This document shows positions 15,560-57,670 of a stretch of 64,000 nt of DNA, one piece after another. Under the pieces are notes generated by a model. That model made no database searches. It was given only the letters and a program-made list of their open reading frames with translations, and had not been told where the DNA came from. The stretch is from Octopus sinensis (taxonomy: Eukaryota), in the NCBI RefSeq assembly GCF_006345805.1, contig NC_043021.1, positions 7,440,001 through 7,504,000 on the forward strand, read 5' to 3'. Within the stretch, counting starts at the first letter, position 1. Each line of letters begins with the position of its first letter. Both the position numbers and the translations under genes were made by a program.

Positions 15560-16210
15560 ATGGAGGAGAGAGTAAGAGAGGAGGACAGAGAGAGGGAGAG
15601 AGAGAGATTAAAACAGAGAGAGAGGTGAGGGAGAAGAAGAGACACACATGCAGAGATAGAAACAAGCAAGACAATGTGAGACAGAGAGAGGGAGAGAGAG
15701 AGAGAGATTAAAACAGAGAGAGAGGTGAGGGAGAAGAAGAGACACACATGCAGAGATAGAAACAAGCAAGACAATGTGAGGGAGAGATTAAAACAGAGAA
15801 GGAGGGAGAGAGAGGGGGAGAGAGAAGTAATATGAGAGAGAGAAAGAGAGAAGGAAAGAAAACTTAAGACAGAGAAAGTGGAGAGAGATGGACAAGGGGG
15901 AGAGAGAGATGCAGAGAGAGAGAAGCAGAGATAGAATCAGGCAAGATAATGAGAGAGAGAGAGAAAGAGAGAGAGAAGTAGAAAGAGAGAGAGAGAAGTA
16001 GAAAGAGAGAGAGAGAAGTAGAAAGAGAGAGAGAGAAGTAGAAAGAGAGAGAGAAGTAGAGAGAGAGAGAGAGAAAAAGAAAGAGAGAGAGAAGTAGAGA
16101 GAGAGAGAGCGGTTAAAACTAAAAGCAAGAGGGAGAAACAGAAAGGTTAAGACTGAGAGAGAGAGAGAGGGAGAGGAAGAAAGAAAGGTTAAGACTGAGA
16201 GAGAGAGAAT
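15560..16210. repeat. GA-rich compound repeat with an internal ~100-bp tandem duplication and GAGAAGTAGAAAGAGAGA units
   Basis: 15603-15680 is repeated at 15705-15781; short units at 15970-16110. Confidence 0.85.
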
Positions 16211-16623
16211 GGGTGAACTGTGTAAAACTACTGACCATTTGTGAGCATTAGCAGCTTGTCCTTCTGAATGCATTGACACACTACTCAGTGAGGAAGGTGA
16301 AGAGAGAAAGAAAGAGACATACAGTGAATTAAGTAATCAACAGGTGGAGGCTAAGAAGGAACAGGTGGTGGGGTGGGGGTGGGGGAGTTGAAGGTGGTGG
16401 GTATGGTGACAGGTTGCCTATCTTCTTTTCATTTCTTGTTTTATATATATATATATAAAAGAGGTGCAGGTGTGGTTAAGATGTTCACTTTGCGGCACAC
16501 ATGGTTTGGGGTTCAGTCCCACAGCAAGGCACCTTGGGCAAGTGTTTTTTTACTAGAACTGCTTTGTGAGCGAATTTAGTCAATGGAAACCATATGAAGG
16601 CCCATCCTATAGTGTGTGTGTGT

Positions 16624-17074: not shown

Positions 17075-17294
17075 TTATATAATAGACACAATACATGTTT
17101 CGTTTTTCGATTCGGTTTGCAAGATTCTTTATGTGAGTTCGTGTGTTGAAGCATATTCTGTTGTGTCTGGGGAGAGTCATTTTCTTTTTGTGCCTTATAA
17201 TGTAACACACTCACTGGTAAATTTTCTACTTATTTCTTTTTTATTTTCCTAAAATTTTTGTTGTGTCTTGCAACCTTTTCAAAAGGTTGCAAGA
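17075..17294. mobile_element. Penelope-like fragment (family F) ending in an inverted junction
   Basis: Colinear with 35555-35760; ends in a 14-bp perfect inverted repeat. Confidence 0.6.
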
Positions 17295-18137
17295 ATATTA
17301 GGTCACTCATTTGTGAAATAATCATTGTTGTTGTTGTTGTAGTGGTCGTTTTCTCTTTCATTATTTTCCCATTAATTTCTTTGAAGGACAAAACATCCTC
17401 TGTAGTATCAATTTCCACTGCAGTTCGAATAAATGCTGATGTTTTGTATCTTATAAAAGTCTTACAGATGACATCAAGTCTGTTAGTAACTAAATATGAA
17501 GAACTAATTTATTCTAAGGGAAAAGACACTTGCCCAAGGTGCCATGCAGAGGGATTGAACTTAAAATTATACAGCTGTGCAGTGAACTTTTCAACTAAAC
17601 ATCCATGCATGCATCTATGGTCTACAACCGCTATACTAACACTCCTTGTTTTGCCTATCATGTGTGCACATGCATACACATGCAAATACATGCACATTCA
17701 CAGAAATTTTCCTCTGGATTTATTCATTAGACACCCACTTATCACATGCACCCACACAATTTCCAGTCAATTTTAGTGTCAGTGACCAGGCTGTACTTGT
17801 ACAGTAAACTCTCCCTCATCTGGTACTCAAATAACCAGAATGCTCAAACAACCAGCACCCAGGAAAAATGAAAGAATGCATTGTTACTAAGAATCAGGAG
17901 TACCTACTACTTTGGCATGGTTTCTATGGCTGGATGTCCCTCCTACTACCAACCACTTTCCAGCATGAGTTGGGTGCTTTTTTCTTGAAGCCACCATGCA
18001 GTTTTCAAAATTACAAACCACAAGTGGACAACTTTATGCCAGAAGATGAAGGATAAGAGAAGGGTAAAAATATAGGAGAAGGGGCCAGAGTAGAATATGT
18101 TTCTTGTAGAGGTGCTACATGACTATTCAAATTTTAA

Positions 18138-20220: not shown

Positions 20221-20366
20221 CATTTCCAGTCGAGTGAGTTTCTCAAGTTCCCATTGGTGTTCTAAGATTAAAGAGTCACCACGGGGCCGCCAGCCGTTAA
20301 GGTTCTCCTCCCCACGAACATAGGTGGAAGATGTATCTAGAACACGACGCTGACGTCTTTGTACAC
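20221..20366 (-). CDS. unc-104: unc-104/KIF1A exon ([49 protein letters not shown])
   Basis: ttgtag| acceptor, |gtaaga donor, 146 nt, phase 1 to 0. Near-identical to the Unc-104 motif. Confidence 0.97.
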
Positions 20367-21412: not shown

Positions 21413-22172
21413 ATTATTATGACATAAACACAGAGAGAGGAAAGGAGAGAGAGAGAGAAGGAGTGAAAAGGAGACAGACAGACAGAGTGAGCAGAAGAGA
21501 GAAATAAGCAATTACTGAGATGACTCTGATTAGACCAGTTTATTTCAGTTACACCTTTAAGAAAAGAATGAAAGTTAGGCATTCTCCAAGAAAGAGAGAG
21601 AAAGAGAGGGGGGGTAGGAAGACAATAGACAAGAGAAACAAGAAAGGGATAGGAAAAAGGTTGAAAAGAAAAAGGAAAGCAGGAGTGGGAAGAGAATACA
21701 GAAGAAGAGGTGGAAAGCCGATGGAAATGAGGTAAGTGTTGGGGGAACAGGGGCAAAAATGGGGAGAGATGGCCACGAGAAATAGTGAAAGTGGATCGAG
21801 AAACGAGAAGGCAGAGGAAGAATTCACCGGAATACAGAGGCAGGAAAGGAGTGGACAAAGAGGGAGAACTAGTGAACACAGGAGAAAAATAAGGGTGAGA
21901 TGGGGCAATACAGAAATAAAGAGAAAAAATAGGGGAGAAAGAGGAAGATTGTGAGGAAAGGCACAAGCGTGAGAGAGTATGAGACATTTGGCAAAACTGT
22001 TACTGTGTTGCTGATTCATGTTGACTAATTTGACATTGGATACTTTGACTTTGGGTCGTTTTGGAAGTAGGAGCATTTTTAGTGACTATTCTTGTTGACA
22101 ACTAACTTATTATCACAACTATTAATCTGGCTGAGTAGTAAATTTCTTTAACTTCCTGCTTCACTTTATGTA

Positions 22173-22706: not shown

Positions 22707-23159
22707 GATTCGGTATATGGAAGCTAATGTCTATGTCAATCAGTTACAATTAATATTAAAATCTCTCTCTCTCTCTCTATTTACCTCTCTATCTATCTAG
22801 CCATCCTTCCATCATCTATCTAACTATTTGTATATTTATATTTCTTCATATGTATGTTTGCCTCAAGGCTAATGTAGAATTATTATATATATATATATAT
22901 ATATATGTATAATTAAACTAAACAAATTAAAGCTATACAACTAGCAAAATGATAAACTAGCTACTGAATAATCTGTGAGTTTCTGAATCAAAAATATCTT
23001 TTTACTCTCCACCTGATATCTCTTCCAATGAATGTAAATTATGATTTTTGTTTTTTGAAACTCAGAAAACTTAATTTTTGGCAAAGGAACATTAAGAAAC
23101 TATCGATGGTAGGAGATGGAGTAGATAGGGAACCTAATATTGTGTGCTGAGGTACTTAC

Positions 23160-23219
23160 CACGGGCTAGCATTACCCGTTGAAGATCTCCATGCACCGAG
23201 AACCTCTTGGGGCGAGAAA
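23160..23219 (-). CDS. Candidate 60-nt cassette exon of unc-104/KIF1A (VSRPKRFSVHGDLQRVMLAR)
   Basis: tttttgttctgctag| acceptor and G|GTAAGT donor; phase 1 to 1, open in the frame of the flanking exons. No homology recognised. Confidence 0.65.
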
Positions 23220-23338
23220 CTAGCAGAACAAAAATGATTTTTTTTTCTCAGCAAAGAGAGAAAGTTCAGAAAAGTGAGAGGCAGGGAACGGATAGGAGGA
23301 TGAGCAGGGGAAAGTGTGACAGGGAATGGAATAAACAC

Positions 23339-23374
<36 letters not shown>

Positions 23375-24439
23375 TGGATTGGTGGAGGGAAGGAGACAAA
23401 AATATAAGGAGAAAGGAAAGTGGAAAGTAAGACAGGTAAATATAGAGGAGGGTAAGAAAGAAAAGGTAAAAAGGGGAAAGTTAAGATTAAGAAATATGAG
23501 ACAGAGAGAGGGAGAGAGAGCATGAAAGAGAGAGGCTTATCAAAGTTATGTTCTAAATCAAGGATTTTATTCATTTTGTGTGTGAGCTTTAAACCCTTCA
23601 AAGTTGGGGAACTTTAACTCATCTTAATTGCCAAACCTTAATCAATTAGATTTGGTTAGAGTGGGCAAAAGTTAAACTTGCAAAATTTCAAAACAAACTC
23701 TTCTTTCATGAGTGTTGTTGTTATTAACTCAGCCAAAGAAGTGCTGCGCTTTAGAGAAGAGAAATCAAGTTCAATTTCAACTATAGCAATTGATATATCA
23801 TTTAGATTTGTCTTTATTTTGTAGTCAGAAGGAAAAGCAGTTCTCATGATCCTTTATAGGGCTTCTGAGAAAGAGCGGGAAATTCCCTTCAAACCTGAGA
23901 TCTGACTTGAATTCTTACAATGGAGTATACTCTGCTAAAGTCACTCAATTGGGCAGGTGGTAGTGTTAACTATGTGACCACCCATACAGGTCACAGCGGG
24001 ATTTAAATTCAGAATGGAAAGTGCTGGAACAAATACCACAAGGCATTTGGTTCGACATTCTTAGTTCCACCAATCTCTCAATCTGGATTGGTAATTCCTT
24101 CTTTTTTTTTTTTTTTTATCAGACCCCGCAAAAAAATTAGAAGAGAAAAATGAGAAAAGGAAAAATATGAAAGGCAAAGTTGATTTTATCAAAATGTGAA
24201 CTCGGGTCACTAGGTGCCAAAACAAAAGCTGCAAGACATTCCATCCAATGCTCTAATGACTCTGCCAATTCCACCACCCATAACTGATCACTTATCAAGT
24301 GAATACCTCAACTGATAAATGGAGGAGCCCTTATTGATAAATGAGGCAAGGGCTGATATTTAATGTAACAATGCTTCGATGGTTGTGATTTGAAACTCAG
24401 AAACCTGCTTTCGCTTTTCAATAAAAATATTCTTGCATC

Positions 24440-25862: not shown

Positions 25863-26062
25863 TGTATATATCATCATCATCATCATCGTTTAACGTCCGT
25901 TCTCCATGCTAGCACGGGTTGGACGGTTCGACCAGGGATCTGGGAAGCCAGAAGGCTGCACCAGTTTCCAGTCTTATCTGGCAATGTTTCTACAGCTGGG
26001 TGCCCTTTCTAACGCCAACCACTCCGTGAGTGTAGTGGGTGCTTTTTACGTGCCACCCGCAC
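25863..26062 (-). mobile_element. Family B element
   Basis: catcatcatcgtttaacgtccg..gctttttacgtgccacc. Confidence 0.85.
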
Positions 26063-26156
26063 AGATATATATATATTATATATTCACAGACAGCAGACAG
26101 ATAGATAGAACAAGAGAGAAATTATATCAGAAGAAATGAGACAAGTGATTATTTAC

Positions 26157-26263
26157 CTGGACTTCCAGAATTGTTGCAACGGCGTAAGAACAATTCATAA
26201 ACACCACCTAGTCTGTTGGTGTCCTTGCGAGAATAACCTCCAGAAAATAGGTTACGCAGGGAT
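26157..26263 (-). CDS. unc-104: unc-104/KIF1A exon ([35 protein letters not shown])
   Basis: tttcag| acceptor, |gtaaat donor, 107 nt, phase 2 to 1. Confidence 0.95.
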
Positions 26264-29789: not shown

Positions 29790-29955
29790 AAGCACGGACG
29801 TGGCTGTATGGTAAGAAGCTTGCTTCCCAACCACTTGCTTTTGGGTTCAGTCCCACTGCAAGGCACCTTGGGCAAGTGTCTTCTACTATGGCCTTTGGCT
29901 GACCAAAGCCTTGTGAGTGGATTTGGTAGACAGAAACTGAAAGAAGCCAGTTGTA
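29790..29955 (+). mobile_element. CORE-type SINE family C
   Basis: gtggctgtatggtaagaagcttgc..caccttgggcaagtgtctt..gaaactgaaagaagcc. Confidence 0.85.
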
Positions 29956-35554: not shown

Positions 35555-35885
35555 AAATGTAATGCTTATTTTTCGTTTTTGGATTTGGTTTGCAAGATTC
35601 TTTATGTGAGTTCGTGTGTTGAAGCATATTCTGTTGTGTCTGGGGAGAGTCATTTTCTTTTTGTGCTTTATAATGTAACACACCCACCGGTGAAATTTCC
35701 ACTTATTTCTTATTTTTATTTTCCTAAAATTTTCGTTGTGTCTTGCAACCTTTTCAATAGTCTTGACTCTGTCCGGAAAGAGTCAAGACTATTGAAAAGG
35801 TTGAATGGACAGAGTCAAGACTCTTGAAAAGGTTGCAAGACGCAACGAAAATTTTAGGAAAATGAAAATAAGAAATAAGTGGAAA
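35555..35885. mobile_element. Penelope-like element end with 79-bp inverted repeat
   Basis: Arms 35696-35774 and 35807-35885 with 3 mismatches; body shared with 17075-17294. Confidence 0.65.
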
Positions 35886-39180: not shown

Positions 39181-41284
39181 GTTATCTCAATGAAAATGTT
39201 TATCCACAGATTTTAAGTATCCAAAAGTCATCAAAGGAAAACATATTTATTTATATACACCCAATCTCTTATATAAGTGAACAGATTCTTACATAAACAG
39301 GCTATCTAGTGCATATATAATAGCTTTCTCTCTCACTCTGTCTCATGGAGACACATCCATTCACATCAAAACACTTTGCAGACACACATGTACCTGTAGA
39401 CACACAAATATATATTGATCAACATAAATACAGAAGCCAGTCGAGGCGGCACTGGCATCGGCCACGTTCGGGTGGTGCTTTTTATGTGCCACCGGCACAG
39501 GTATCACAACAACAATTTCCATTAGATATTTATTTTGATGTGCTTGACTCAATAGGTCTCCTCAAGCACAGCAGGTCGCCCTACGATCCAAGGTAAGTGC
39601 AGCAGGCCGTTCTGCGATCCAAGGTACTTTGGATGGGCTGGGGCTATGCGAAACTGGTGCAGGAAACAGCCATGAACTCACATCATTTGTCAGGTCTTAG
39701 GAGTCACAGCATATCTCCAGAGATATGAAACAAGTGAAGACAAGGTGGGAGAGAAGATAACAGTAACTAGTTAAAAAGGAAAAACACAAAAATGGCTCTC
39801 ACAAATATTCGATTCCACAATAAGCGCAAAACACTCAAATAATATCTAAGAGAAGTCACATATGTAATTCACCAAAGATCAAATATTTTAAAGACTACCC
39901 AATTATCTATGAAAAAATTAATCTATTTCAGCTAATACATGGGAACGAATCAAACATGGATGTTATTAGCTATTCTCAATAAGTTCTGACTGAATATGTT
40001 TATGTCCTCAAAGCAACTGATTAAATCTATCATTAAAGCAGGGTTTCTAATTATGGTCATCTTTTCCTTTTCATCAGCAACATTATACTAGAGATTTACA
40101 ACTTGGTGTGTAACATCTCAAAAACAGCTTTGCAGTTACACTTGCCCTATTTGTGTGAATAAAACATGGGTTTTTAACATTTTAGTGCCGATTACTAATG
40201 AATATTCATTAGTGGGAATTTCAAGAGTTCTTTTATGGGGAAAAAGCTGAACTTCCTGATAGAAATTTCAAAGAGATGTTATGTAAATGTTATGTAGAAC
40301 TCAGAGAAGAGAATTAAACCAAGAAAACATATGATGTGTTATGCCAAAAAAATGTTAACCCAGCAAATCTTCTACAGCACAAAATGCAAAAAGAAAAACA
40401 CATAATTTATATTTGTTTGTGTATATAGGGCAGGGGTGCAGGCATGGCTGTGTGTTCAGAATTTTTGTTTTGTAGCCATGTCATGTTAAGTTCAGTCCTA
40501 TCAACTGACTTTTTAAGCAAATGCCTTCTACTATAGCCCTGGGCTAACCAAAAACTTGTAAATGGATTTGGTAAGCAAAACCTAAAAGAAGCCCATTGTG
40601 TGTGTGTGTGTGTGTACATGATTTGAGTGTATTTGTAACTCTGGGTCTCAACACTGCATGGTAGTTGTAAACAAGTATCACTGTCATACAAGCAGTGTCA
40701 ATCATTTTCAATCTTCTGTGAAAACATGTCTTGTCGTAGGAAATATCCCTTTGCTTGGAAATAGGTGAAGGTTGAAGACAGGAAGGGCGACTAGCCGGAG
40801 AAAAATCTGCCTCGATACACGAATGGAAAAGTGGGCATCAAAGGAATGATGACGTCAGAGACATATTGCGAAACGAAGGAAGAGAGGTAAACGAAGTAGG
40901 TTTAAAACAATCACTCTTATATTACATAAAAATGAAACTATATGGCTTAAAGCGAAATGATTTGCTGTCTGAATAGAACATGCTAAAACTATTATGCACC
41001 AACAGAAATGCAGAATATATATACAAACACCCACTACACTCTCGGAGTGGTTGACGTTAGGAAGGGCATCCAGCTGTAGAAACTCTGCCAGATCAAGATT
41101 GGAGCCTGGTGCAGCCATCTGGTTCACCAGTCCTCAGTCAAATCATCCAACCCATGCTAGCATGGAAAACGGACATTAAACAACGATGATGATGATGATG
41201 ATGATATATGTTTATATAAGCATGTGTGTGTGTTAATATACTTCTACACATCTGTATATAGCAAATATGTCTTGTAAGGGAATC

Positions 41285-47702: not shown

Positions 47703-48805
47703 TTATGTATATATATAATATATATATATATGTATATATTCACATGTATATGGACATACTTGTTGACATTATTGAGTGACGTAATATAACTAAGGGAGTG
47801 AAGTGTGAGTAGTGAGAGAAAGAGGAGGCAGTGAAAATAGAGCGGGGAGGTGAGAGTAAGAGAGAGAGAGAGAGTAAGTGAGAGAGAGAGAGTAAGTGAG
47901 AGAGAGAGAGAAAGAAATTAAATGGCAGAGAGCCATGTAATAAAACGCTCGCATCGTTAGATGGGTGGTGGATGTTGTTATTCCTGTCTTCAAGGAGACA
48001 AGAGCAAGACATTAGCTAGACAATGAGAGTAGATGTTAATACAACAGAGATGTTAGTAGTGAAGTCAAAGAAACCATTCACCGAGTTGGAGTAGTAGTAG
48101 TAGTAGTAGTAGTAAAAAGGATAGTAGTTGATAACTTGAAGTCAACCTTACCAATTGGTTAATGATTTGTTTATCTCCATTACAAGAGAATTAAGTGGTA
48201 TGTCTACTTCTGAAGTGCTACAGAATTGGTGCAATGGAAAATAAAAACATAACACAACGATAACAACAACAACAATAAATAATAATAAAGAAAGAAAGAA
48301 AGAAAGGATGATAAAATAAAAATTCATAAACAGGAGTTCCAAAAAATAAAACAAATAGAAGAAATGATAGAAAAAGAAAAAAAAAACAAAAATTAAAGTG
48401 CAATGCTATAAAGAATAAAGAAACATTTAAAACTGAAGAATATTTTCTAAATGCTTATTCTATGTTTATACCATGTAAACTAATTCCAAACAAGACCTTA
48501 GCCAATCAAAAAATGCCTTAGTTAGCAGGTAGCTATTGCATCACCATCATTATTATTATTACTATTATTATTATTATTATTATTATTAAGAAGGCGGTGG
48601 GCTGGCAGAATCATTTGCATGCCAGGCCAAATGCTTAGCAGCATTTCGTTTTTACCTCCTGAGTTCAAATTCCTCTGAGGTCAACTTTGCTTTTCATGCT
48701 CCCAGGGTTGACAAAATAAGTATCAGTTAAGTACTGAGGTCAATGTAATTAATTGACTTACACACTCCCCTCAAATTGCTGGCCTTGTGCCAAAATTTGA
48801 AACCA

Positions 48806-50239: not shown

Positions 50240-50922
50240 AGTGGCATGTAAAAAGCACTATTCAAGCGTGATTATTGCCAGTGCCACCTGACTGGCTCCT
50301 ATGCCTGTGGCACATAAAAAACACCATTCGAGCATGGTCAATGCCAGTGCCAACTGACTGGTCCTGTGCTGGTGGCACGTAAAAAGCACCCACTACATTC
50401 TTGGAGTGGTAGACATCAGGAAGGGCATCCAGATGTAGAAACCTTGCCAGATCAGATTAGAGCCTGGTGCAGCCTTCTGGCTTGCCAGAACCTCAGTCAA
50501 ACTGTCAAACCCATGCCAGCATGGAAAGCAGACGTTAAACGACGATGATACACACACACACACACAGACATGTATGTTTATTACACAAAAAGCACCAGCC
50601 TAACTGAGTCTCACCAAGCAATTGATCTCAATTGTTTTCATCATGTAAAATGTACTTCTATATATTTTACTGTTCTTACATTATTATATATGCATGAGCG
50701 TGGCTGTTGCCAGTACCACCTGACTGGCCCTCGTGCCAGTAGCATGTAAAAGCACCCACTACACTCTTGGAGTGGTTGGCATTAGGAAGGGCATCCAGCT
50801 GTAGAAACTTTGCCAGATCAGATTGGAGCTTGGTGTAGTCATCTGGTTCACCAGTCCTCCGTCAAATCATCCAACCCATGCTAGCATGGAAAACGGACGT
50901 TAAACGATGATGATGATAATGA
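50237..50922 (+). mobile_element. Two adjacent family B elements (50237-50550 and 50695-50922)
   Basis: Both end in catggaaa..gacgttaaacgatgat. Confidence 0.85.
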
Positions 50923-51907
50923 TGTGAAGGCACATGGCTCAGTAGTTAGGGCCAACACTCTAATATAATTGTGAGGTTGTGAGTTCGATTCCTGGACCAG
51001 GTTGTGTGTTGTGTTCTTGAGCAAAATACTTTATTACTTCATGATGCTCCAGCTACTCAGCTGTGGAAATGAGTTGCGACACCACTGGTGTCAAGCTGTT
51101 TCAGCCTTTCCCTTGGACAACATCAGTGGCATGGAGAGGGGAGACTGGTATGCATGGGTGACCGCTGGTCTTCCACAAAACAACCTTGCCTGGACTTGAG
51201 CAAATGATGCTCTTTTGCCCATGAAAAATTATGCCATGAAGTTGTTATTGTTTCATCTACAGATAACTGATAATCTCTGTGTGTGAGTGTGTGTGTGTGC
51301 ATAGATTTGGTGGAACAACCAGGAGAAATAGAGAACCCTGCTGTACTCTTTCACCACAAATTTCTCTCACTCTTTCTTCCTGTTTCTGTTGTACTTGTAT
51401 TTCAAAGTACCAGCCTTGTCACACTGTGTCATGCTGAATCTCCCTGAGAACTACATTAAGGGTACACGTGTCTGTGGAGTGCTCAGCCACTTGCATGTTA
51501 ATCTCATAAGCAGGCTGTCCCAATGATCAGATCAACTGGAACCCTCGTTGTTGTAACCAACAGAGTGCCACAACGAATATAGAATAGTATAGAATGGTAT
51601 AAAAATGCACTGGCAGGTGCAACATAACTGAAATATATCATGGCACACAACCCAGTATGCTTCATATTATTTGCTGAGAATGCTGAAGAAATGGGTTGAC
51701 TATACTACAACTGCCTTGTATAATGATGACAATTGGTTAACTGAAATGAGTGTATGTTTTATAAAGCTTAAGATACCAATTATGTTTTCTGTGTTTATTA
51801 TTACTATATATTCATATATAAAGTATCAGGCAAGTTTTCAGTCATAGACAGAATTAAAAAGACAAAGAAAAGGTAAGGTAGATAAAAATGAAACAAAAAA
51901 TACATAC

Positions 51908-54731: not shown

Positions 54732-56683
54732 CTAGCAGTTAAGCCCAGTTTCACCCGGTCTGTTTTGATGATGTGGCTGTGATCATTTTCGGTTAGACAT
54801 AATCTATAACAGCATTTCTCAACCTTATCATTTCGGGTCCCCCGTTTCGATTGGAGTCTCCAGCTGTCAGCTGTATGAAAATTTCTTCCCCCACTCTTGT
54901 CAGGAAACAGCCTCAGGAGTTGTGAAGAAAGAATTTGTACGTAGTCTGTTTCTGAGAGCTATTGTATTGGACCTCTGTCCAATCATTAAAACATTTATTT
55001 AATTATGAACATAGAAAGAAATCATACATTAATCCCTATTTTTGTAAGCAGCTGTATCCATAAAAATTTTATTTGCAGATAGCAGAAATTGAAAGAAGAT
55101 ATGTGAAATGGACGTGTGTGTGTGTGTGTGTATCTGTGTGGATGTGTGCTTGCGCATGTGTATGTGAGGGAGAAAGAATGTGAGAAAGAGAGATAGAGTG
55201 AGTGAAGTGAAAATATCTTCGCAGAAAAGAGCTTTAGTTGTGAAGAAAGAATTTGTACGTTGTCTGTTTCTGAGAACTATTCTATTGGACTTCTGTCTAA
55301 TCACGTCTTCGAAGGTACACACATATACATAGAAAATGTGAGGTCATAGTAGAACATTTTTACAATAGTTGATTCATGGAAAAGATTATGTGAAATTTTT
55401 GAAATGCAAATCTGTGAATGAAAATGAAGTTTAGATGTCTACATGATAGGTAGACTTGGTAGAAATAGTAGCCAAATCTCCCTCAAAACACCCTACTGTA
55501 TTAATCTGTCAATTTTGCCTATTATGTAGTTTGAATGAGAAACTCTAACTAAAGATCATCATCGAAGATAATTAACCCCACAAAGAGGTGAAAGAAGAGA
55601 GACAGCATAGAGTTTTGGCTGACTGTCATCCTGCAGTTCCCTTGTTGCTAGCAGACTAGTATATGGTGGCTGTGTGAGCAACTGGTTGTTTTAATGGGGG
55701 AAGAAAGAGGGGAAGAAGTTTTAATCAATTTTCTCGGTAAGTACAGGTACTAGGAAAAAAATAGAAAAGGCATTAAGAAGTTGACGTTAAGAATTGCTTT
55801 AACAGTTAGAAAATGTTTGACATTTCAATCATCATATTATCTGTCTGTAAGAATTTACAGGGAAATTGTATGTAAGAAGTAAAGCAGAAATGGTTTTTAA
55901 CTGTACTGCCAAAGTTCTGCAACTTAATAACTGACATATCCAATTTAAGAAAAGTGAAGATAAAAGGTAAAGTAGATAAGTATGTAAGTCGTTGTTAGAC
56001 GTTTATAGAAAAAATAGACACGTACCTTTCTAGAGAACAACAATTGGGGTAGAGGTATTGTATTGGACGTCTGTGTAATCAGAGAGCAGAAATTGAAAGA
56101 ATATATATGAAATGGACACGAGTGTGTGTGTGTATGTGTGTGTTTTCCGGCTACTTCGGCGGGATTTCTGCAGTCAGCATGAGGTGGTTTGTGTTTATCT
56201 CTGGAGGGGTGGAAAGGGGATCTTTTGAAGTCGTCATGAAAGCGAAAGAGACAGATAGTATGAGTGAAGTTGCTTTGAAGTTGGCGTGAAGCGGAAGAAT
56301 TGATGTGCATGCATGTGTGTGAGAGAGAGAGAGTATGTGTGTGTGTGTGTGTGTGTGTGTTTGATAGGGTGTGCAATATGGGCAAGAGAGTTAACTGAAA
56401 TTTCGTTATTCACTTGTTGTAGTGAGAGAATGTGTGAGTAACAGAGAAAAGGAGAGAGAGGTTATGTATGTTGGTATGTTGGCAGGGGAATTCCATCAGA
56501 AAAGTTTTAATTGATTTTCTTGGTAACTATGGGGGCTAGGAAAAAAAATACAAACTGCATTCCAATCTATGCACCCGTCTCCACATGCATGCCATTTTTC
56601 ATGCGAATCCATCCAGCCGTTTGGCTGTGAACCTCAAGACAAGGAAGAATACAACGCTCACCCATGTCCAATTTATATTATAT

Positions 56684-57004: not shown

Positions 57005-57440
57005 CATCATTATCATCATCATCCGCTTTCCATGCTAGCATGGGTTGGATGATTTGACTGAGGTCTGGCAAACCAGATGGCTGCACCAGGTTCCAATCTG
57101 ATCTAGCAGAGTTTCTACGGCTCGATGCCCTTCCTAATGCCAACCACTCCGAGAGTGTAGTGGGTGCTTTTACGTGTCACTGGCACGGGGGACAGTCAGG
57201 TGGTACTGGCAGCGGCCATGCTCAAATGGTGCTTTTTATGTGCCACTGGCACTGGCAATGACCTCGTTCGAATTTTTTTTCACGTGCCACCAGCACAAGT
57301 GCCAGTAAGGCGACATAGGTAACGATCACACTCGAATGGTGCTTTTTACATGCCATCAGCACAGAGGCCAGCTTGTTGCTCTGGCAATGATCATGCTCAT
57401 ATGGTAATCTTAGCCCTCCACTAGCACAGATGCCAGTCAT
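57005..57440 (-). mobile_element. Family B element with several internal GTGCTTTTTACGTGCCAC units
   Basis: Direct alignment with the other copies. Confidence 0.85.
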
Positions 57441-57670
57441 CGAATTTTATTTCAATTTCAGTAATAATTATTTCAAATTTTGGTGACAGCTCATGCCAGT
57501 TTCATCTATGTCCAAACTCACATTTGATAAGTTCCACCTTAATTTCAGTTAGGGTAATTTTAGCTAAATCTGATCCCCACCATTAACGATGTCTAACTTC
57601 ACTTTCATGTATGTTCCCATCATCATTTTAACCTTTGTTGTGCAAGAACCACACCAGATTAACCATTAAC

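Follow-up and report, generated by a model that had tools for sequence, protein, structure and literature searches.

The comparisons presented here suggest that a 60-nt segment on the minus strand of a 64,000-nucleotide stretch of the Octopus sinensis genome (hereafter the window; positions 23160-23219) is a genuine, so far unannotated alternative cassette exon of the octopod unc-104/KIF1A gene, a reading to which we assign a probability of roughly 0.7. The cassette sits between two constitutive exons that are joined directly in all known mRNAs, and its boundaries, length and frame have stayed identical since Octopus and Argonauta diverged, within an intron that has otherwise diverged past alignment. 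Its inclusion would most likely be low or restricted to certain tissues.

The host gene and the candidate cassette within it

The exons of the host gene were located by tblastn with a human KIF1A sequence, which was put to no other use, and their boundaries were set by enumerating frame-keeping GT/AG pairs. This gave 15 collinear minus-strand exons, running from 60.1 kb to 12.3 kb, that cover the C-terminal third of a kinesin-3. When translated, all window exons match the O. sinensis unc-104 proteins XP_036369357.1 and XP_029651128.1 at 100% identity, which identifies the window as the 3' third of the gene for the kinesin-3 synaptic-vesicle motor unc-104/KIF1A; judged by this identity, the source is O. 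sinensis or a genome nearly identical to it. The reconstructed 515-aa product contains DUF3694 (PF12473) at residues 152-298 (E 7e-45), followed by the QRRQRR...GWRPRGD segment, a coiled coil and a C-terminal PH domain, and this order of elements, together with orthology, places it within the KIF1A/unc-104 group of kinesin-3 proteins. At 14513-12347, the exons for the PH domain can be aligned with KIF1A; those for the motor and FHA domains are not part of the window.

Queries with the spliced peptides of 104 and 515 aa recovered only distant relatives, none of them from a cephalopod, with lengths of 64-179 and 302-895 aa; matches were apparently limited to proteins of about 0.57-1.75 times the length of the query. 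Triplication of the query in tandem gave access to full-length orthologs and recovered O. sinensis unc-104, Argonauta hians unc-104, and a squid and cuttlefish cluster that includes the Doryteuthis pealeii kinesin-3. The gene ranges over 184 kb in O. bimaculoides and 112 kb in Sepia pharaonis, and is compact in Argonauta hians; in O. sinensis it has at least five annotated alternative regions. The features that bear on the cassette are the following.

23160-23219, minus strand: candidate cassette exon, 60 nt, phase 1/1, encoding V-SRPKRFSVHGDLQRVMLAR(-G); read directly, with an Argonauta ortholog
26157-26263, minus strand: upstream constitutive exon, ending in a phase-1 G; 100% identical to XP_036369357.1, 86% nucleotide identity to Argonauta
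20221-20366, minus strand: downstream constitutive exon, 84% nucleotide identity to Argonauta; within the kinesin-3 tail this segment is the most conserved, with invariant columns
23220-23233, minus strand: 3' splice-site region with the sequence ttttgttc[t/c]gctAG, conserved as part of the 90-nt blastn block (85.6% to Argonauta)
23144-23159, minus strand: 5' splice-site region with the sequence GTAAGTACC[t/g]CAGCAC, conserved as part of the 90-nt blastn block with Argonauta
23220-23530, minus strand: low-complexity sequence, mostly (CT)n, on the upstream side of the cassette; 81% pyrimidine across its 311 nt; Octopus only

An earlier sequence-only reading had described a 60-nt cassette here, and its coordinates, splice sites, phase, open frame and peptide were all confirmed on the minus strand. 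With a slash marking each splice junction, the upstream exon ends in ...AAT TCT GGA AGT CCA G/gtaaat at 26157, and the downstream exon starts as ttgtag/GT GTA CAA AGA CGT CAG CGT CGT at 20366. The acceptor of the cassette is ttttgttctgctAG/, with its AG at 23221-23220 after tcatttttgttctgct (longer upstream context tcatttttgttctgctAG), and the donor is G/GTAAGT, where GTAAGTAC begins at 23159. Together with one carried-over base (phase 1), the encoded segment begins with V, and the final G of the cassette, joined to the GT of the next exon, restores the Gly of GVQRRQRR; the inserted peptide VSRPKRFSVHGDLQRVMLAR would fall between ...CNNSGSP and GVQRRQRR. In both Octopus and Argonauta the cassette is stop-free in the phase imposed by the flanking exons and its length is divisible by 3, and both of its splice sites, the acceptor ctAG/ and the donor /GTAAGT, are canonical for the gene strand and kept in Argonauta. 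The acceptor scores 0.81 with a generic matrix, at the weak end of the gene's constitutive exons (1.4-9.0), and the donor scores 5.65, the second best among the 13 exons scored (range -1.5 to 6.2). Such a pairing of weak acceptor and strong donor is typical of cassettes.

Two other interpretations of the segment were rejected at this level. An alternative acceptor at 23246, which would give an 87-nt version, scores well, yet lies outside the conserved block, and was rejected as the main form. A structured non-coding RNA was rejected on a fold z-score of -0.97 and the lack of any Rfam family above threshold; the sole match in the Rfam scan was sub-threshold, at 22.8 bits against a gathering score of 41, and lay 100 nt away on the opposite strand.

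Conservation in Argonauta and expectation by chance

Conservation was tested in one other species, Argonauta hians. A tblastn search between the orthologs of the flanking exons, at 67477-67581 and 69743-69888 of the Argonauta locus (L006), found an orthologous block of 60 nt at 68386-68445 with the same splice sites, length and open phase-1 frame (VYLPKSFSVQADLQRVLLAR). The DNA around the block reads ...acttttgttccgctag/TTTATCTTCCCAAGAGTTTCTCGGTGCAGGCGGACCTCCAACGGGTACTGCTGGCCCGTG/gtaagtaccgcagcac, with acceptor ttttgttccgctAG and donor GTAAGTACC, and the block encodes V YLPKSFSVQADLQRVLLAR. By blastn the identity is 85.6% over 90 nt (E 7e-25), a stretch made up of the cassette and 14 and 16 nt of splice-site flanks. 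Absence from related cephalopods had been named beforehand as a finding that would count against the exon; in Argonauta it is present with identical boundaries, length and frame.

The conservation is confined to the exon and its splice sites. In the inter-exon blastn comparison only three significant blocks are collinear, namely the cassette and its two neighbouring exons (86% upstream, 84% downstream); the other matches are repeats at non-syntenic positions or low-complexity sequence, and the remaining intron is unalignable. Over the whole window, the collinear chain with Argonauta consists of the annotated exons and five other blocks, four of which belong to repeat families that have 7-48 members in the Argonauta locus and 8-14 in the window. 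In each locus the cassette occurs just once, and it is the sole single-copy conserved block of the window besides the annotated exons.

Substitution patterns were used to consider what kind of constraint has preserved the block. Between Octopus and Argonauta the flanking exons have a dS of 1.37 and a dN of 0.011, and neutral sites are thus saturated between the two genera; the persistence of the cassette at 85.6% identity points to strong purifying selection on the block. Its boundaries are exactly those of an exon, and the substitution pattern leans towards coding: seven of the 11 substitutions in the cassette fall at codon position 3 (binomial p ~0.04, from a manual count on the alignment), and in the predicted frame dN is 0.144 and dS 0.369 (omega 0.39 over 21 codons), as against an omega of 2.6 in the other open frame. 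This omega is no more than modest evidence for selection at the protein level. The low dS indicates constraint at the RNA level, and a non-coding exon-like element would be expected to show the same.

These last observations bear on a different explanation, in which the segment is a conserved exon-like intronic element, either a decoy or pseudo-exon or a splicing-regulatory module, that is recognised but kept out of productive mRNA and would aid or regulate removal of the long intron. The dS of the cassette, 0.37, is far below the 1.4 of its neighbouring exons, as RNA-level constraint predicts, and the peptide is 70% conserved where the flanking exons are 97-100% conserved; moreover, no annotated or assembled transcript carries the cassette. 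However, alternative exons are commonly low in dS too, and a non-productive element does not account for the preservation in both species of the frame, the length of 60 (a multiple of 3) and the stop-free state, nor for the third-position bias and an omega below 1 in the predicted frame only. A recursive splice site or RS-exon, as one form of such an element, was rejected, since TTTCTC and not GTRAGT follows directly after the acceptor AG. We regard the non-productive element as unlikely, and retain the alternative exon as the preferred reading.

The exon-like character of the segment was also set against what the intron would yield by chance. We scanned the 38,991 intronic bases between mapped exons with position weight matrices for stop-free, frame-preserving segments of 27-300 nt whose combined splice score equalled or exceeded that of the cassette. 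Five candidates were obtained, of which two use the cassette's own donor, one is an annotated exon (42283-42242), one is repeat-derived (35768-35688) and one is unexplained. With about five comparable candidates in 39 kb of intron, splice sites and open frame alone, judged by the window alone, are within chance expectation. Composition gives the cassette some weight: its GC content is 0.55, with four CpG (o/e 0.88), compared with a GC content of 0.36 and a CpG o/e of 0.30 in the intron, and a comparable composition occurs in just 0.6% of 60-nt intronic windows. No second copy of the cassette was found in the window, where only the upstream (CT)n tract has matches, to (CT)n tracts elsewhere, and on this ground a repeat or transposon origin was rejected.

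The yield of the scan, including one candidate that is clearly repeat-derived, is what would be expected if the segment were a functionless open frame that happens to be bounded by AG and GT in a long intron. That explanation is extremely improbable in view of the 90-nt match at the syntenic Argonauta position, between introns that are otherwise unalignable and at a distance where dS is saturated, and in view of the single-copy state of the cassette in both loci. On the cross-species comparison, the cassette is far beyond chance, and the earlier description of a frame-preserving, exon-like and lineage-restricted cassette in the kinesin-3 tail is well supported by the genomic data.

The same comparison provides a view of the other alternative exons of the gene. 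The annotated alternative exons at 48154-48219 (TSEVDIPLNSLVMEINKSLTN) and 16226-16282 (SVSMHSEGQAANAHKW), both on the minus strand, are conserved at 57586-57639 and 73341-73400 of the Argonauta locus. The first of these has 72% protein identity in Argonauta, against 70% for the cassette. Though present in the Argonauta genome, it does not appear in the only Argonauta protein model, a sign that this model may under-represent isoforms. The 42-nt exon at 42283-42242 (minus strand; SPLAVPSGWTLDP), annotated in O. sinensis isoform X6 and also picked out by the blind scan of splice sites and open frames, was not detectable in the Argonauta locus and may be specific to Octopus.

Interspersed repeats are a further feature of the window. 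Copies lie at 25900-26070, ~57090-57180, 50759-50923, 41161-41203 and 29865-29951 (e.g. ...ccaacccgtgctagcatgg...), and related copies occur in the Argonauta unc-104 locus (7-48 matches), so that the families are common to octopods; in alignments between species they give rise to blocks that falsely look conserved. Another repeat, which carries an open frame (...EKVARHN(E/K)NFRKIK...), has at least two intron copies, at 35688-35768 and ~17233-17508 (minus strand), the former of which mimics a frame-preserving cassette with good splice scores. A 45-nt stop-free, frame-preserving candidate at 56026-56070 (minus strand; TSNTIPLPQLLFSRK) also has good splice scores; it lies outside the Argonauta-conserved blocks and is probably due to chance.

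Occurrence in transcripts and candidate regulatory features

The cassette was found in none of 32 cephalopod proteins and transcripts, all of which read directly across the junction between GSP and G and thus represent the skipping form. These sequences comprise eight O. sinensis RefSeq isoforms out of 12, with X1, the longest, among them, seven from O. bimaculoides, one each from O. vulgaris and Argonauta, five from Sepia pharaonis, the Doryteuthis pealeii kinesin-3, and nine Logan transcript assemblies from decapodiforms; O. sinensis isoforms X3, X5, X8 and X9 and some O. bimaculoides entries fall outside the comparison, and to that extent a small doubt remains. Isoform X1 equals X2 with an additional "KQ", as predicted, and an exact look-up showed it to be 1819 aa, the longest, and without the cassette. 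When the cassette was inserted into X1, X2, X4, X6, X7 and X10, all six of the resulting sequences were absent from a collection of 15 billion proteins. Of two pattern scans of metagenomes, one returned nothing and the other a single chance match.

The collections contain no partial octopus transcripts, and absence from them is weak evidence about inclusion. RefSeq models draw on RNA-seq, and absence of the cassette from the models implies that its inclusion is low, restricted or nil.

Outside the cephalopods the junction is equally uninterrupted. It was described in the sequence-only reading as contiguous in the human and fly proteins, and it is indeed without an insert in these and in other kinesin-3 sequences: GSP/G-[VIM]QRR is contiguous in almost all of about 200 other kinesin-3 proteins examined. 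Among some 150 full-length kinesin-3 proteins from molluscs, annelids, nemerteans and insects, an insertion at the junction was found in one, an ab initio model, and its sequence is unrelated to the cassette. A search of representative proteins likewise recovered none with the cassette. Apparent insertions in P0245, P0252, P0258, P0259 and P0111 proved to be vertebrate ORFs that read through short introns, and apart from such read-through ORFs the fish KIF1A and KIF1B proteins recovered have no insertion at GSP/G. Five loci from compact non-cephalopod genomes (L001-L005), with introns of 140-380 bp, do not contain the cassette, and are uninformative for cephalopods. In a genomic comparison that covers Octopus and Argonauta, the exon appears to be restricted to octopods.

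The sequence-only reading had gone further and proposed that the exon is under neural regulation through RBFOX and PTB, with a possible influence of temperature, and provides a PKA-type K-R-F-S phospho-switch beside QRRQRR. Each of the features on which this proposal was built is present in Octopus. The peptide R-P-K-R-F-S fits the basophilic (PKA/AGC-type) consensus [RK][RK]-x-[ST], and with Arg at -5 is a good predicted site; TGCATG occurs in the exon at 23195; and the CU-rich tract upstream is real and fairly unusual, being one of only three regions of the window that reach 80% pyrimidine over 300 nt. The insertion also adjoins the invariant basic segment.

In Argonauta these features are largely lost. 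The equivalent peptide is L-P-K-S-F-S, which retains the Ser and, at -3, the Lys but has lost the Arg at -2 and -5, and the basophilic consensus is not conserved between the two genera. The exonic hexamer reads TGCAGG, and no GCATG was found within 300 nt of the Argonauta block, so that a conserved (U)GCAUG in or near the exon is lacking; within the window, TGCATG is present 54 times on the cassette strand against about 12 expected, a roughly 4-fold excess. The orthologous 310 nt upstream are 57% pyrimidine and unalignable to the low-complexity Octopus tract, and a conserved upstream CU-rich tract with UCUU or CUCUCU was likewise not found. With K-R-F-S, UGCAUG and the CU tract not conserved, the comparison gives no support for neural, PTB or RBFOX regulation. 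The reading of the exon as a regulated phospho-switch is speculative, and we consider the full model, with its regulators and its kinase site, quite improbable.

As to the other pyrimidine-rich regions, the strongest tract of the window lies at 15800-16250 (minus strand; 85-92% pyrimidine over ~450 nt), directly downstream of the alternative exon 16282-16226, and a third is located at ~21850-21950.

Predicted consequences and comparison with known systems

Under the preferred reading of an alternative exon, the spliceosome would include the cassette in only a minority of the mRNAs, or its use would be confined to a particular tissue or stage. Inclusion would insert a basic 20-residue segment with the conserved core P-K-x-F-S-V-x-x-D-L-Q-R-V-(M/L)-L-A-R. 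The net charge of the peptide is +4 in Octopus and +2 in Argonauta, and its C-terminal half, DLQRV(M/L)LAR, is the best conserved part. The insertion point lies about 42 residues C-terminal of the Pfam DUF3694 match, and two residues before the invariant QRRQRR...GWRPRGD segment.

The structural setting was examined in an AlphaFold2 model of a homolog, P0130, which is 65-68% identical, lacks the cassette and has a mean pLDDT of 72.5. In this model GSP/G falls in a loop that directly follows the final beta-strand (residues 203-214) of the DUF3694-containing folded region. It marks the start of a 30-residue stretch with a pLDDT of 38-54, which is yet the most invariant part of the tail, and a long helix follows. 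On the basis of this model an insertion in the junction loop should be structurally tolerated. The most likely effect would be to alter how far the folded domain lies from the invariant motif, and the electrostatics between the two, and such a change at the hinge would tune the binding of adaptors or cargo, or tail-mediated autoinhibition. Phosphorylation of the conserved Ser may contribute; this would be the weakest step of the proposed mechanism. We therefore put forward only tentatively the idea that octopods have an isoform of this motor of synaptic and dense-core vesicles in which a basic 20-residue module (PK-FSV--DLQRV-LAR) before QRRQRR switches autoinhibition or the binding of cargo or adaptors, in a manner specific to the lineage and restricted to certain cell types, possibly by way of phospho-Ser. 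No comparable insertion before QRRQRR was seen in any other animal examined.

If inclusion of the cassette is confirmed, a missing isoform would be added to a key axonal-transport motor of the octopus, a model genus for neural complexity and transcript-level diversification. The hinge before the invariant QRRQRR...GWRPRGD segment would be marked as a site that both tolerates and keeps an insertion, and the cassette would offer a natural means of probing the function of this segment, one of the best-conserved stretches of the KIF1A tail. The syntenic intron alignment of Octopus with Argonauta recovered the annotated exons and one single-copy block, which suggests a cheap way of searching for missed exons in very long cephalopod genes.

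One point of comparison is mouse Kif1a exon 13, which lengthens the neck hinge between the neck coil and CC1 and raises dimerisation and activity (PMC12436618). It resembles the cassette in being a small frame-preserving cassette in KIF1A, and it is regulated (PMC12436618). In contrast to the cassette, exon 13 lies in the neck and hinge, at residues ~390-430, belongs to another lineage, is unrelated in sequence and has a function that was shown experimentally. An alternative exon of cichlid KIF1A is reported to lie inside DUF3694 (PMC13646608). It has in common with the cassette both alternative splicing and the general region of the KIF1A tail, but the octopus cassette lies after the Pfam match.

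Insertions at the same GSP/G intron position are present in protein models from Branchiostoma belcheri (P0124), Cyprideis torosa (P0002) and Tegillarca granosa (P0375). They are unrelated to one another and to the cassette, and the models are ab initio or unnamed. These insertions are probably intron-derived model artefacts; it is possible that they are instead independent alternative exons at this phase-1 intron.

Close counterparts of the cassette are found within the same gene. The exons that distinguish the O. sinensis unc-104 isoforms X1-X12, among them 48219-48154 and 42283-42242, are like the cassette in being short and frame-preserving, in encoding linker-like peptides of the tail, and in lying within long introns. 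These two exons are represented in RefSeq isoforms, whereas the cassette is in no isoform examined; and unlike these two, the cassette lies C-terminal of DUF3694 and beside QRRQRR, where almost no kinesin-3 examined has an insertion. Small alternative cassettes are common in kinesin-3 tails, and the cassette is unsurprising in kind. The new elements are its position directly before the invariant basic motif and its apparent restriction to octopods.
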